Origin: Oculina patagonica
Lineage: Eukaryota
Length of the DNA stretch: 64,000 bases
Assembly (NCBI RefSeq): GCF_052425735.1
Contig: NC_135770.1
Location: forward strand, 6,324,001 to 6,388,000
Reading direction: 5' to 3'
Shown here: positions 38,058 through 64,000 of the stretch, piece by piece
Layout: each line of letters begins with the position of its first letter
How positions within the stretch are numbered: the first letter of the stretch is position 1
Made by a program: the position numbers and the translations under genes
The notes under the pieces: generated by a model
The model's database searches: none
What the model was told of the DNA's origin: nothing
Seen by the model: the letters and a program-made list of their open reading frames with translations, nothing else

Positions 38058-41000
38058 TTACGCCTGACCATAACACCTGAGTTTTCCTAATGTATGATAT
38101 CCTTCTTCGTATGAATTATCCAAGTCTCCCAGTCTGATTTGTGTCACAGGCAGAGCAGACTTGTCTGTCAACAGACCGCTGTCCTCTGTCCAACCGGTGT
38201 TACTGGCACTATTATGACAGTTACACTTGCGACTATAAAGACTGGAACAAGAGTCTGTTACTCCGCATGCGCACATCTTGTCATGGCCTGTAGCTCCGCC
38301 CCAGTAGTTCATCCGTGTTCCATCACGTGACACCCACCAAGCATAACTCTGCTCAATAAACCCCACGCCATTATTGCACTCAAACTTGATAAACTGTTCG
38401 CAGCTCTGTGAGACTCGAGTGAGTGCTGCTAGCTGAGCGGTGCTGACTCCAGTGTATCGCACATCTTTACTGTAACAACCTCGACCACCACATCCAGGAA
38501 TGTTACCAGCATAGGTTCTACTCTCACTGTCGTGACTGATGACCGTCACGCCAACACCGCCCTTGTCACTCATGTCACAGTACACACTGAAGGGAGTCAC
38601 GCCTCCTTTGCCATCAGGATCAATCATATAATTACCTGAAGAGTTTCCACTGCGGCTCGATTTTATACTGCTGCAGGACATGGGTGTATTGTACACTTCA
38701 AGAACAGATGTTGCCTCGATAGAACGCTGAGAGTTTTTTGCCACGCATGAATAAGTCCCGGCATCACTTGTGGAAACGCTTTGAAGAAACAAAGTTCCGT
38801 TTGGATAAAGAACATGATTCTGAGGGAGATTTTGGCCCGCTCTTTTCCAACCAATGTGCACCGAGCCCTGAGACGTGCAATGCAGTATCACATTACTGTA
38901 AAAGGATGCAACAGATTTCACTGGAGGGGATAAGGAAAATTTGAGTTCATCTATTACTGTCACTTGAACAGTAGCGGAATCCTCTCCAAGGAGATTCTTT
39001 GCCGAGCAGGCGTACGTCCCACCGTCAGATTTTGCTATAGTGCGTATGGTCAATTTTCCATCAACAACTGAAGTCTTTTCTTTTGGCAGCAATTGACTAA
39101 ACGCTTTTCGCCACGTGACTGTTGGTGTCGGCTGACCACTAGCTTGGCAGATCAGGTTCACGTTCTGTCCTTCTTCAACGATGACAGATGAGGGCTTCCG
39201 AGTGATCACAGCGCTAACTAAATCGAGGAAACAAAAACAACAGTAATAAAACGATTGGGTTGGGAGAACTTGACAGACCCGGGACTCTCTCCTTGTGACA
39301 TGTTGGCCAGAAATACTTTATTCTTATAGATGAACAATTTACTTGAGTTTTCACCCAGACGATAACTTTCTTCTATAGCTAATAGCTGTACAGCCATGTT
39401 ACTAATTGCAAATACAACCTCGATACAGTTGATAAATGTAATATTTCTTACCCACCTTGAACTGACAACATAGCCGATGACGTCATTTCTCCAAGAATAT
39501 TTCTTGCCACACAAGTGTACATTCCTTCATCTTGTGACGTCACATCTGTAATCATCAGACCACCACGTGACAGCACCACTTGTTTGCCCGCGAGAAGACT
39601 GGAATTCTGCTTCAGCCACGTGACTTTAGGTTCCGGGTTTCCTTCAACCTCGCACTGAAACGAGGCTGTATCAGTTTCGTTCACCACCATGGACATCGGA
39701 GGTGCCGCAATTGAAGGGGCTGAGATAGATTTACCAGGATCGCCCTTGGGTCCTTGGGGGCCTTGGTCGCCTTTAGGTCCCGGAGTTCCCTGAATTCCCT
39801 GAGTACCTTGGTTTCCTTTAGGTCCCTGTGGTCCTTGCGGCCCGGGCGGTCCATGTTTACCTGGAGAGCCTCTGGGACCAGGCCTGCCTCGTCTTCCCCT
39901 GTTGTTTTTGGGGCATTGAGCATTGCAGACCAGGCTACTTATAGCTAGTAGCACCTCTTTTCTGATATCTTTACGATCGATGGTTTCACTGGCATTTGAT
40001 TTCTTGTTTGTAGTTTCCACATCTCTTTTATAACGAACGCGTAGCTCTGAAAGAAACAATTTACAATGAATTTAATACACGTCTGAGTTTATATTTCACT
40101 CAGTCAATTCAACGCCCTTTTAGAACTTTCGTTCCCAAAAGTCTAATTTTGAAGTGAACAAAAAGATTGCATAAGTTAAAGAAGTCGATAGATTCTAAGA
40201 ATCTGATAAAGTTTGCAACAGCCAGGTGATTAATCAAGATCGGAACTGAGGTGGACAAATTGATATAGCCTAATTTGATTTCTTTCAAATTTGGCAGAGA
40301 ATCAAACTAACCGTATGGCTTGTACTGATTATTGACTGACTACCAGCGTGATTAATATAATTGCTCTCGAGCTCGCACGTGTTCATATCTAATTCTAGCC
40401 AGTAAACTAGCTTTTAAAATAATAGGCCTTTTCTTTTTTGACTGAAATGTTGTGGGAATGTTGCTGTTCGATGCTTCAATGTCTTTCCTGAAATGCTGAC
40501 AGTCGCTCAAAGAAAGGACACAAATGCTTCAAACATTTCTTATGTTACTGCGCTAGGACGTAAGGCAGAACAGTCTTCTGTAGGCTAACTTTAACTACCG
40601 GGCAAATGTTAATTCAATGCTGGCATTATTCTTAATGATTTTACCTAACTTAACTTATCGTGTATAAGTTATTTCTGGAATATAGACTAAAATACTCTGG
40701 ATTGTTTTCCCAAAATAAGAACACGGGATGGCGGTTCACAGGAGTCATGTTTCAACCTCCTTAGTTTCAGCTGTAGCTTCTTTAGATGAATAAAATTCCT
40801 TGTAAACAACTATTTTCTCGATAACTGTATTACTCACCTTTGTTTGCATCACTATGTAACATTTTTATCAGAAACTCATTTTCGTCGTTTGCTGTGTTTC
40901 GTAGCTCGAGCTTTTCTTCTCTTTGTTGATTCAAGACTTGAAGCATATGTCGATGAACGTGAAGTTCGATCTCGACGTGAATCAATCCCGCGAAGCAAAT

Positions 41001-41066
41001 AACGGTGAGAAATATCGATGAAAATACCACCGTGTTGGGCACTGGGCGACTCTTTGATATCTCCAT
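38058..41066 (-). CDS. Paralogue A: type II TM - furin site - collagen (19 GXY) - 3 Ig - Caspr/fibrinogen-like domain, 659 aa
   Basis: Exons 41066-40838, 40046-39456, 39217-38058 (phase-1 introns, 1980 nt in frame). [21 protein letters not shown]; RYKR; I-set Ig motifs (C..G.P.P.V.W; D.G.Y.C.A.N); SC...[10 protein letters not shown]...F.VYCDM; YWGGA...CACG...CNC...LPVTQ..GD. Confidence 0.9.
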
Positions 41067-43290
41067 AACACCGTCTGGGGAGGCTGCGAGAATTATCAAG
41101 CTTTGACAAAAGTCTTCGATATAGAGCGAAACTTGTGCCCGTGTGGTCGAAGGCAGACAAAAAAAAAACACAATGTTTGTTGGCGCTGCGCTCTAACCCT
41201 TCTTTGACCTTTTTCTGGTTTCAACTTGCATTGGATCAGTTTCAAACTTAGGCTAGAGCTCTGTCATTTCTCCTGTCCATGTGTCATGTTCCTGTAGGTG
41301 TGGGGTGGGGGCATCGGTGAAAAGTTGTATTCTACAGTACAGTAAGATCGCGCAATATAACGACTTACCAAGGGACTGGGAAATTGTGCTTGTTATGTTA
41401 CGGGTTCGTTATACCGGAGTGATGTCCCAGTACATTTCACTGTTAGTATAACGTTGGCTGGGGCTTCGTTATAAAGGGATTCGTTACATCGGGTTACTTA
41501 AATTGTTTGCTAAAATTTGAGAGGATCGGTCGGAGTCTATACACCAACCCAGCGGAATATTGCTTTAAAATATTTGTAGTGTGAATATACAATGTAGAGT
41601 GACATATTTTGCCCTTAGTCCAGCTCGACTCACGCAACGTCATTGCGTGACCGAGAGAGAGAGAGAGGGCCAGAACTGGACATATTTTGCCCTTTGTTTA
41701 GGAATATGTATGAATTCTAGTAATAGCCAATGGCTAGAAAGTGCGGACGAGGACGATACGTGGTGTTTTGGGGTAAAAAAGGTTTATATTGTCCGAGGTA
41801 TAGTCAGCAAGGAATGCTCAGTACTTAAAAGGGTGTGAATTATTTTTTAGGGCATGCCCTGTACCTGCACCTCTCTCCCCCTCCCAACCCCCCCATAAAT
41901 TCCCTGTTTACATTAATTTTCTCCAGTATCTGGTACTTCTCAAGGTTGAAAATAGTATGTGGTTTGACTAACCAAACGTAAAAAATTGCTGTTTTTGCTA
42001 TCTCTTCTTTAAACTTCTTAAAACTATTGCCAAATCGCTGCACTGACTCCCGATATAACGCTCTAGACACATGTACGCGTTGCAGACCTATGTGTTCCAT
42101 GCGGTCGGCAGGGAGGGCGAAAGTTCAACACCCAGGCGGGCAAGCACGTGGTATTTTTTCCCTCCGACGTGTTTTTTTCTTTCTTTTTCCCCCCAAAAAA
42201 GCTAATAAATGCTTCCCATTTATTATTTTACTCAATATTCCTGCATCGACATGCCCGCAATAGTTTTAAAGGGAAAGCGTACCTTCAGTACATGTCTGGA
42301 CTGAAAAATAATCTTTCGTCTTGATCGACGCGCAATTTTCCGATGAGTGTTGCAAGGAAGGGAACAACGTCGTGCCTGCGAATAAGGGTGGGGCAATGCT
42401 CGGCGCGCGATTTTCGTGCATATTCCATATCTTCATTCGCCTACCGAACTCACACACACGTTTGTAGTGTATAAGCGTTCCAGACAGTAGCGGAAACCTG
42501 GTTGTTATAGTAAAGCGTGTGGGAACCTTATGTGAGACGAGAGGGTAAAAACAGGGGTTCCCAAGGTGAAGGGAAATAGAAAAACATGAAATTCATTTTC
42601 GCAATATCGGAGTTTTTGCGTAATAATATTTTTGCATTAGAAAGAACACAAAGAGGCGGGGACAACCTAGTTAACTAAGTATTTCGAGACGGGGAGGGGG
42701 AGTGGCAGCAGGGGATTTGAAATTATCTTTTAGCAGAACTTTTGGAGTATTCAAGTTCTATATTGGGACCTTCAGAAAAAAAAAAACTTTAGGAGGAAGA
42801 ATTTCTGAATCTGGAAGGAGATATATTGCCTTGGTCTAGGAGACATTTTATTTTTCTTCTTTGTCAAATAACATGAAAAACAATAAGCAGGGTATTGTAT
42901 ATGTGCTTGACAATGTTACACCAATTGCACTGAAATAAGAGTTTATTGACACATAGGAAATTACAGTGTTGGGACAATAAACTGTGTCGGTCTTAGTTTC
43001 ATATACCATTAAATCTAAAGGAATATTTTTCTCAAAAACTATCATAACTGGTAAATAATTGTTTTTTCTTTGTTTAAATACTGTTAAAGCTAAAGCATAA
43101 AGTGTTATTCAATCCATACCACTTTTAAAGTTATAAGAAAATGATCACGTGTTCCTCTTTACGTTCGCTAAATTAATAAATAAATTGAGGCATAGATGAT
43201 GATAAATGCAATGATATTAGTTCTATTTAACATACTCGCTGATGTCTGTTGTCTTTGTGAAGCAGCTGTCAGTGATGTCAAGCCAAAACC

Positions 43291-63109: not shown

Positions 63110-63319
63110 TTAGGCTAGAGCTCTTTCATTTCTCCTGTCCATGTGTCATGTTCCTGTAGTGTGGGGTGGAGGCATCGGTGAAAAGTTGTATTCCACAGTA
63201 GAGTAAGATCGCAATATAATGACGTCTTACGTATACCAAGAAACTGGGAAATTGTCCTCGATATATTACAGGTTTGTTATACCGGAGTGTTGTCCTAATA
63301 CATTTTACTGTTAGTATTA

Positions 63320-64000
63320 AGGTGAAGGGAAATGGAAAAACTGGAAATTTATTTTCGCAATATTGGGGTTTTTGCGTAATATTTTTTGCATCAAAATAAC
63401 ACAAAGAGGCGAGACCACCTAGTCAACTAAGTATTGGAGAGGGGGGGGGGGGGGGGAGTGGTAGCAGGGGATCTGCAATTCCCATTCCCATATCTTTTAC
63501 ACAAGGTTCCCTGCACTGAACTCGAATGACGTCAGTAAAAATTCAACTTTTTAGCCTTGAGAGCCTTGAAGTTATATGAGTTCTTTTTTAGGACCTTAAG
63601 AGAACAATGAAAGCTTTAAGAGGAAAAATATCTGAATCCAGGCGGAATTATATTACTTGGTCTCGGAGACTTTTTCTTCTTTGTCAAATAACATGAAAAG
63701 GAATAAGCAGGGTGTGTATGTGCCTGAATACGTTACAGCAATGGCATTAAAATAATAGTTTATTGATACATAGGAAACCACAGCGTTGGGACAACAAACT
63801 GGGTCGGTCTTAATAGTTTCATCTACATTAGATCTAAAGGAATATTGCTCTCATAACTGGACATTTTTTGTCCAAATGCTGCTGAAGCTAAAGCATAAAG
63901 GGCTATTAATTCCATACTATTTGTCACGTTTCAGTGTTACTACTAAATCACATGCACTCCTTTTAACTTTCGCAATCGCTAAATTAAACTGAGGTACATG
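63320..64000 (-). other. 3' flank/UTR of a probable fifth paralogue lying beyond the window edge
   Basis: Homologous to the sequence downstream of the stop codons of B (42565-43200), C (51670-52355) and D (57980-58615). Confidence 0.65.

Follow-up and report, generated by a model that had tools for sequence, protein, structure and literature searches.

A tandem cluster of CniFL genes with Caspr/COLFI-type heads in the stony coral Oculina patagonica

What do the repeated genes at 38058-64000 of a 64,000-nucleotide stretch of the stony coral Oculina patagonica (NC_135770.1, positions 6,324,001 to 6,388,000; hereafter the window) encode, and what might their products do? The window belongs to a 38.3-Mb chromosome-scale contig, contains zero N runs and has a GC content of 34-47%. 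An earlier reading of its letters alone (the sequence-only reading) had described an array of membrane-tethered, furin-sheddable proteins made of collagen, immunoglobulin (Ig) domains and a fibrinogen-like head, had likened them to ficolins and molluscan FREPs, and had recognized no named gene of this architecture. Sequence comparison assigns the genes to a named family, CniFL, and within it to a clade whose head is of the Caspr/COLFI type. The locus is the distal end of a large tandem CniFL cluster on an O. patagonica chromosome.

Motif scans of the six-frame translation counted 4 collagen starts (GRRGRPGP), 4 heads (YMIDPDG, HTLGKL) and 4 intact anchor exons, with an additional degenerate anchor exon, the fifth exon 1 of the count, near 46000. 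The array comprises four head-to-tail paralogues (A-D), an orphan exon 1 and 3' flanking DNA from a fifth copy, all on the minus strand. Copies A and C are intact, B lacks Ig domains and D is broken. The tandem arrangement and domain order of the earlier reading were recovered in these four paralogues: N-tail, anchor, RxKR, CxxxC, collagen, three or zero Ig domains, and head. The flank at the window end is the following feature:

63671-63930, minus strand: 3' flank of a further copy, with its coding part past the window end; 75% identity to 52009-52285, directly downstream of the C stop codon (self-BLAST)

Since this segment resembles the DNA 3' of the C stop, another copy begins beyond the window end. 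Paralogues numbered as high as ACROYT_G039885 occur on the same contig, and together with the partial further copy they identify the window as one end of a much larger cluster.

The gene structure is clearest in the two intact copies:

38058-39217, minus strand: copy A exon 3, encoding Ig2, Ig3, the Caspr/COLFI-type head and the stop (two Pfam I-set matches; COLFI 32.5 bits)
39456-40046, minus strand: copy A exon 2, encoding RYKR, CNAQC, a 19-triplet collagen with PGKHGP, and Ig1 (acceptor TTTCAG, donor GTGGGT; Pfam Collagen and I-set)
40838-41066, minus strand: copy A exon 1, encoding the ATG, a 12-amino-acid N-tail, the hydrophobic anchor and a helix-like juxtamembrane segment (in-frame ATG, GTGAGT donor, phase 1, hydropathy)
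52447-53582, minus strand: copy C exon 3, encoding Ig2, Ig3 and the head (head part 52450-53070 used for the structure model)
54854-55444, minus strand: copy C exon 2, encoding RYKR, CNAQC, collagen and Ig1 (open reading frame (ORF) and splice sites)
56221-56449, minus strand: copy C exon 1, the anchor exon (splice donor, spliced translation, hydropathy)

All splice sites are canonical GT-AG, and the introns, two in each of these genes, are all phase 1. Exon 1 ends AAAG^GTGAGT (^ marks the junction), exon 2 begins CAG^AG (CAG^GA in B and D) and ends CA(A/G)G^GTG, and exon 3 begins TAG^TT. The spliced model of copy A has 659 amino acids, of which residues 41-659 are 100% identical to ACROYT_G039808 (P0026), while that of copy C has 651, residues 41-651 being 100% identical to ACROYT_G039810 (P0001), a 'hypothetical protein'. 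Both deposited proteins start at Met41 and so leave out the 40 N-terminal residues that bear the anchor (41066-40947 and 56449-56330). The same exon encodes these residues in frame, and mRNA contigs of other corals contain them; P0028 and P0071 are Oculina models that do include the hydrophobic anchor. Two mRNA contigs without introns (L001, L002), from two JGI (Joint Genome Institute) samples, keep this exon order and have MEK...anchor in frame ahead of the start that was called. They therefore confirm splicing and expression of family members in other corals, as well as the presence of the anchor in the message.

The encoded proteins open with a hydrophobic segment at residues 13-31, the sole window above 1.6 on the Kyte-Doolittle scale (19-residue mean 2.35), with Lys/Arg on its N side. 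Given that sister-clade proteins carry charged N-tails of 14-28 residues, this segment is more probably a type II signal anchor than a signal peptide that is cleaved off. A polar stretch of ~45 residues, which we read as a helix, leads to the furin-type site, which reads RYKR except in D, where it is RNKR. An N-glycosylation sequon before the Cys pair is present in A, B and C and absent in D. The pair itself, CxxxC (CNAQC, CNVHC or CNINC), stands five residues ahead of the collagen, which opens GRRGRPG and has 19 triplets in A and C, against 44 in B (Pfam Collagen, PF01391: 41.9 bits for A exon 2 and 78.9 bits for B; cut-off 27.2). Pfam places three I-set domains between collagen and head in each of A, C and D; in B it finds no Ig domain. 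The C-terminal head has 205 amino acids, and across the encoded proteins Pfam matched only Collagen, Ig and COLFI/Fibrinogen_C.

Which branch of the fibrinogen-related superfamily does this head belong to? COLFI (PF01410) matched the heads at 28.1-35.4 bits against a cut-off of 26.2, a partial match over profile positions 22-150 of 233, and Fibrinogen_C (PF00147) reached 18.6-19.5 bits, below its cut-off of 22, over positions 4-52 only. We modelled the copy C head (52450-53070) using AlphaFold (AF2) on 85 diverse homologues, obtaining a predicted local distance difference test (pLDDT) of 95.9 and a predicted template-modelling (pTM) score of 0.91; a single-sequence model (pLDDT 33) was discarded. 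Over its full length, the model matched the FBG-like domain of CNTNAP1-5, Drosophila neurexin-4 and C. elegans nlr-1 with template-modelling (TM) scores of 0.84-0.87 and 24-36% identity (28-36% for CNTNAP1-5 and neurexin-4), with two rodent CNTNAP5-2 entries at 0.78. Axotactin scored 0.82, the Acropora skeletal-matrix protein B8UU78 0.80, and predicted models of fibrillar collagen C-propeptides 0.60-0.65. Among solved structures, the procollagen I/III C-propeptide (PDB 5K31, 4AE2) gave Z 15.0-16.5 over 180-183 residues (Foldseek E 4e-11). Tachylectin-5A, ANGPTL3, L-/M-ficolin and FGL1 gave Z 6.1-6.8, with L- and M-ficolin at 6.1-6.5 against 16.5 for the procollagen C-propeptide, and fibrinogen, FGL1 and angiopoietin-like domains gave Foldseek TM scores of 0.27-0.31. 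The head sequence profile matched the COL1A1 C-propeptide over 107 positions (E 5e-6) and fibrinogen beta over the first ~50 positions only. The modelled head thus falls in the Caspr/COLFI branch, not the ficolin branch.

A canonical ficolin/FREP-type head was also considered and is ruled out by fold (Z 6-6.8 and TM ~0.3, versus Z 16.5 for the procollagen C-propeptide). As the resemblance to ficolins is remote, ficolin-style acetyl-sugar binding cannot be inferred. The Caspr-type C-terminal domain proposed from sequence is therefore borne out by the model, whereas the ficolin/FREP analogy is weakened by the fold of the head.

The head module is widespread, occurring in 2189 50%-identity clusters (E ≤ 1e-3), and its other contexts include amphibian Xlink-CUB-SRCR proteins with 45-49% identity to the coral head. 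These amphibian proteins (Rhinophrynus, Discoglossus; P0122, P0125-P0128, P0131) have two module copies each and are nearer the coral head than Caspr is (28-36%); one relative is labelled 'neurexin-4-like'. On another chromosome of Oculina, the 579-amino-acid ACROYT_G017221 (P0002) combines EGF with COLFI/Fibrinogen_C matches and shows 54% identity to the head with a very high score; this protein may have two or more head modules, arranged in another architecture.

The family assignment follows from comparison with published CniFLs. These were described as collagen, Ig and fibrinogen proteins, mostly with a transmembrane domain (TMD) and usually with three Ig domains (PMC5094078, van der Burg 2016), having first been reported from the Aiptasia genome (Baumgarten 2015; cited in PMC5094078). 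The window proteins have one hydrophobic segment, at 13-31, as their predicted N-terminal TMD, and a head that scores below the Fibrinogen_C cut-off, a head shared by the published Ap_CniFL1-3. Copy C aligned with Exaiptasia KXJ26555.1 at 43% identity (E 2e-152), collinearly from the furin site to the last residue, the head being best conserved. This protein, annotated 'Peroxidasin-like protein', is Ap_CniFL1 by string match of collagen and head. The published CniFL alignment contains two head types. Most CniFLs (At, Av, Ab, Nv and Adi_CniFL2-5) read like human FCN1, with ...VYCDMTTDGGYGSF...KYRL...GAWW, while the heads of Ap_CniFL1-3, Adi_CniFL1 and Cp_CniFL3 carry AWWVSRDG...CN, the same motifs as the window heads. 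The members of this latter group, including KXJ26555.1, also share the order TMD, collagen, three Ig and 'fibrinogen' head. Collinearity and shared motifs together place the window genes, at the level of sequence, in the Caspr/COLFI-head clade of the CniFL family. Exaiptasia also carries ficolin-head CniFLs, annotated as ryncolins, so that both head types occur in one species. The Oculina copies nevertheless differ from other CniFLs: their Cys pair is C-x3-C, that of Exaiptasia C-x6-C, PGKHGP is found in them and not in KXJ26555.1, copy B is without Ig, and most other published CniFLs have a canonical ficolin-type head.

A named family with this architecture thus exists, contrary to what the sequence-only reading had supposed: CniFL has the TMD, collagen, three Ig and 'fibrinogen', and the window proteins are collinear with Ap_CniFL1. 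CniFLs have, moreover, already been proposed as pattern-recognition receptors of a lectin-complement pathway (PMC5094078, PMC7654579, PMC4840205), so that the earlier interpretation repeats, in substance, a published hypothesis for a named family. Its forecast that automated pipelines would mislabel the genes was accurate. NCBI names of family members include 'contactin-associated protein-like 5', 'Contactin-associated protein 1', 'contactin-5-like', 'peroxidasin homolog', 'roundabout homolog 3-like' and 'striated muscle-specific serine/threonine-protein kinase-like'. For the chassis, the ESM Atlas gave clusters of cnidarian collagen + Ig proteins only, and a full-text literature search with six family accessions returned no paper.

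Several Stylophora CniFLs are named 'peroxidasin homolog' in RefSeq, and papers reporting an epidermal or calicoblast 'Peroxidasin' marker (PMC8913943, PMC8162421) might concern a mislabelled gene. XP_022802122.1 and XP_022779597.1 are Stylophora orthologues of the family. XP_022794431.1, the sole accession given for the Stylophora 'Peroxidasin', is absent from the family accessions that we retrieved, and three family accessions, like any entry called 'Peroxidasin', were absent from the Stylophora cell-atlas supplements.

We next examined which features are conserved among 63 family proteins with collagen and head. Rx[KR]R occurs upstream of the collagen in 48/63, most of those lacking it being N-truncated models, and the Cys pair in 54/63 (C-x3-C in 29, C-x6-C in 25). 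The same number, 54/63, carry PGKxGP. Of all collagen hexamers, PGKHGP is the most frequent in each of the two CniFL clades (30/30 and 21/26 unique collagens) and the only xGxxGx hexamer in at least 50% of both; it is kept although the number of triplets from GRRGRPG to the motif varies, and all four window copies have it. The hexamer fits the motif by which defence collagens bind MASP; we regard this as a lead rather than a result.

Each known system resembles the window proteins in part. Ficolins (FCN1-3) and collectins are alike in their N-terminal Cys segment, collagen stalk and C-terminal globular head, and in a Pro-Gly-Lys-X-Gly-Pro site like the MASP-binding motif, X being His in the window; copy B even shares their bare layout of collagen and head. 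Unlike ficolins, the window proteins have a non-ficolin head fold, three interposed Ig domains, a membrane anchor and a furin site. Caspr/CNTNAP1-5, neurexin-4, nlr-1 and axotactin have the head module in common (TM 0.82-0.87, 24-36% identity over ~205 residues). Caspr proteins combine it with discoidin, laminin-G and EGF modules and a type I anchor, whereas Pfam found none of these modules in the window proteins, which have no type I anchor, their hydrophobic segment being N-terminal. The procollagen C-propeptide is alike in fold (Z 16.5), in its COLFI match above cut-off and in its position after a collagen helix. It differs in showing 18-20% identity, in its first ~34 residues, which have no counterpart, and in its Ca-loop, which is altered in the window heads. 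The helix of fibrillar collagens is very long, while the window collagens have just 19-44 triplets and, in A, C and D, Ig domains between collagen and head.

Collagen XIII/XXIII/XXV, gliomedin and ectodysplasin share the layout of N-in anchor, juxtamembrane segment, furin-type site, collagen and C-terminal globular part, a layout predicted for the window proteins from sequence. The heads of colmedins and type II membrane collagens are olfactomedin, TNF-like or none, and Pfam found no olfactomedin domain in the window proteins; the likeness drawn here is one of layout. Molluscan FREPs likewise place Ig domains ahead of a fibrinogen-related head and form a variable multigene family. FREPs are secreted, with canonical fibrinogen domains and neither collagen nor anchor. 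As the window proteins have collagen and a non-canonical head, the likeness is at most convergent.

The copies have not diverged evenly. A self-BLAST revealed one long tract common to A and C:

39453-42584, minus strand: exons 1-2, intron 1 and upstream DNA of copy A, with 96.8% identity to 54851-58000 over 3.1 kb

The third exons of A and C are only 85% identical, and synonymous divergence (dS) between the two copies is 0.05-0.10 in the 5' domains versus 0.20-0.32 in Ig2 and head. High 5' identity and low 5' dS, set against the 3' exons, point to recent gene conversion or partial duplication as the likely origin of the tract. The collagens of A and C are identical as protein, and the Ig domains are no more variable than the remaining domains. 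Among the heads of 19 Oculina paralogues, 106 of 207 residues are invariant, and variation is concentrated in four patches (residues 65-72, 110-118, 151-165 and 188-191 in C-head numbering), with 30 of 44 variable positions lying outside helices and strands. In pairwise Nei-Gojobori comparisons, the patches had non-synonymous divergence (dN) of 0.28-0.46, dS of 0.30-1.14 and dN/dS (omega) of 0.24-1.02, while the rest of the head had dN of 0.03-0.055, dS of 0.11-0.26 and omega of 0.20-0.33. Because the patches were picked after the fact, their raised dN is circular and only the raised dS is informative. The joint rise of dS and dN suggests mosaic ancestry rather than simple positive selection, and would fit a scaffold homogenized by conversion around older patch variants, the test being a weak one.

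Our best explanation, to which we give a probability of about 55%, is that this CniFL cluster of the Caspr-head clade encodes a shed pattern-recognition molecule that recruits complement. Each chain would be inserted as a type II membrane protein, and three chains would join through the juxtamembrane segment and the 19-triplet collagen helix, with the Cys pair just ahead of the collagen forming interchain disulfides. A furin-type convertase would then cleave after RxKR, releasing a soluble collagen stalk with three Ig domains and a head per chain. The head, an invariant scaffold with four variable surface patches, may bind a microbial or altered-self ligand, and PGKHGP could dock a MASP-type CUB protease, coupling recognition to C3-based opsonization. 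Such a role is plausible, and MASP and C3 are present in anthozoans (PMC5094078). CniFLs increase upon Vibrio infection in Exaiptasia (PMC7654579) and are higher in aposymbiotic anemones (PMC4840205).

Several observations weigh against this explanation. The mRNA contigs come from other corals, and the head type of the genes behind the published Vibrio and aposymbiotic expression data was not traced. The head is not ficolin-type, so that lectin activity is not implied, and its relatives Caspr, axotactin and the coral skeletal-matrix protein are adhesion or matrix proteins. A cut is possible at C-F-A^G, so that the hydrophobic segment may be a signal peptide that is removed. PGKHGP has His at X, where the MASP-binding motif is 'generally aliphatic', and is absent from Exaiptasia KXJ26555.1 and one Oculina paralogue. 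Finally, no domain showed domain-wide positive selection (dN/dS of 0.05-0.61 in every domain with non-synonymous change), and in the patches dS rises along with dN, which is not clean positive selection.

The main rival, which we consider possible though clearly less probable, is that these are adhesive or structural membrane collagens whose shed ectodomain organizes matrix or cell-cell and cell-skeleton contacts, head and Ig domains binding a host partner. The nearest head relatives (Caspr/neurexin-IV, nlr-1, axotactin and B8UU78; TM 0.80-0.87), the colmedin/membrane-collagen layout of type II anchor, furin site and collagen, and purifying selection across all domains speak for it. 'Contactin-associated proteins' have been reported in coral skeletal proteomes (bioRxiv 10.64898/2026.03.24.713908), and were not traced to the CniFL family. 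A structural role does not, however, predict dozens of tandem paralogues with patch-wise variable heads; the conserved PGKHGP and N-terminal Cys pair resemble defence collagens, and Vibrio induces CniFLs in Exaiptasia (PMC7654579). The signal-peptide alternative, in which the proteins are secreted rather than tethered and RxKR removes an N-terminal propeptide, would leave downstream function unchanged. An n-region of merely 12 residues in this clade and the small residues at -3 and -1 of C-F-A^G within the segment are compatible with it, but the uninterrupted hydrophobic run of 19-20 residues, the longer charged tails of the sister clade (14-28 amino acids) and the TMD called in most CniFLs (PMC5094078) make it unlikely.

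Could the head instead be mainly a COLFI-like assembly domain that registers three chains and nucleates the triple helix, leaving recognition, if any, to the Ig domains? Its best solved-structure match is indeed the procollagen I/III C-propeptide trimer (Z 15-16.5, 180-183 residues), its COLFI score exceeds the cut-off (28-35 bits versus 26.2), and in copy B the collagen directly abuts the head, as in procollagens. We nonetheless hold this to be quite improbable. The match begins at propeptide residue 34-35, so that the N-terminal segment, which forms the trimer stalk of the propeptide, has no counterpart; ~290 Ig residues separate collagen and head in A, C and D; and the window heads have DPDGKGG..T where procollagens have the Ca-loop DPNQGC..D. 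The same domain also occurs in non-collagenous, presumably monomeric contexts (Caspr, Xlink-CUB-SRCR proteins), and in type II membrane collagens nucleation usually starts at the N-terminal end. That the array is an allorecognition (tissue compatibility) locus is very hard to credit: the general pattern of a clustered, variable, Ig-bearing surface family is all that speaks for it, whereas the proteins have no cytoplasmic signalling tail, the Ig domains are not more variable than the rest, and solitary anemones have family members. Pattern recognition with complement recruitment remains our preferred explanation.

More tentatively, a single conserved chassis (type II anchor, furin site, Cys pair, Lys-site collagen and three Ig) may underlie all CniFLs and carry interchangeable heads, ficolin-type or Caspr/COLFI-type. 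The latter would have expanded to dozens of tandem copies in stony corals, with the scaffold homogenized by gene conversion and four patches kept diverse. For ficolin-head CniFLs, the shared chassis is read solely from the published trimmed alignment.

The remaining copies record loss and decay within the array:

43291-44453, minus strand: copy B single coding exon, encoding RYKR, CNVHC and a 44-triplet collagen abutting the head, without Ig (acceptor TTGCAG; Pfam Collagen and COLFI 35.4 bits)
43943-44217, minus strand: copy B collagen expansion, a 45-bp unit (five Gly-X-Y triplets) repeated 6.1 times (Tandem Repeats Finder: period 45, 89% matches, no indels)
45878-46125, minus strand: copy B proximal exon 1, disabled by a +1 nt insertion at the anchor start that separates the ATG from the hydrophobic segment
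49525-49753, minus strand: orphan intact exon 1 ('E') with a good donor; 85.8% identity to the C exon 1 region
58709-59824, minus strand: copy D exon 3, frameshifted by a 32-nt deletion near 59558 in the Ig2-Ig3 linker (aligned with A and C)
60150-60740, minus strand: copy D exon 2, encoding RNKR, CNINC, collagen and Ig1, with two Gly-to-Glu interruptions, GPPEPQG and GTPEPKG
62541-62769, minus strand: copy D exon 1 (anchor), intact (exon 1 alignment, spliced translation)

Pfam found no Ig domain in copy B (43291-44453), whose homology to C skips from mid-collagen to the start of the head (self-BLAST), a jump that fits a genomic deletion of ~2 kb. Expansion of the copy B collagen by the 45-bp unit would fit as an event following this Ig-removing deletion. 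The lesion in its proximal exon 1 emerged from an alignment of five exon 1 copies and three-frame translation. The orphan exon 1 lies 5 kb upstream of B, with no exon 2 or 3 of its own and only intron-1 fragments downstream; spliced in silico to B it yields a 463-amino-acid protein, and it may serve that copy. In copy D, stop codons follow the deletion break, and we consider it a probable pseudogene. The locus evolves by duplication, domain loss and decay, and from the near-identical A/C tract we infer sequence exchange between copies. The birth-and-death dynamics suggested by the sequence-only reading are thus visible in pseudogene D, the orphan exon and the A/C tract.

An Rfam scan of 38000-64000 gave no matches. 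Elsewhere in the window are four features that lie outside the array:

2796-10044, plus strand: 3' exons of a pyruvate carboxylase gene (HMGL-like, PYC_OADA, Biotin_lipoyl)
6194-7066, minus strand: intronless rhodopsin-type G-protein-coupled receptor ORF (290 amino acids; 7tm_1, 94 bits), between two pyruvate carboxylase exons
22477-23112, minus strand: 211-amino-acid ORF with a MYND zinc finger, unrelated to the array and presumably PDCD2-like
31164-31688, minus strand: 174-amino-acid ORF, Gly/His/Gln/Pro-rich with C-terminal GGGGFD repeats and no Pfam match

To the CniFL family the window adds an Ig-less, repeat-expanded copy, the exact lesions in D and in the proximal exon 1 of B, the A/C tract and the PGKHGP constraint. 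We did not find the conserved furin-type site, the PGKHGP constraint, the D deletion or the A/C tract in the CniFL literature, of which the founding Aiptasia genome report was not covered. Misleading public names (peroxidasin, contactin-associated protein, roundabout, SPEG-like) can lead the functional interpretation of coral omics data astray, and it is unsafe to borrow ligand predictions from ficolins for this clade, whose head is not ficolin-like. The family-wide constraint on one Lys-containing collagen site makes it the obvious residue for the question of MASP binding. If the chassis hypothesis is true, corals would have in these genes a counterpart to diversified innate receptors, with PGKHGP as the link to the MASP/C3 pathway. 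Corals and anemones have few candidates for lineage-specific pattern-recognition receptors; CniFLs are among them, and are tied by hypothesis to symbiont uptake and pathogen defence. As O. patagonica is a classical model of Vibrio-induced bleaching, a large, evolving CniFL cluster in its genome is a concrete place to seek host determinants of infection and resistance.

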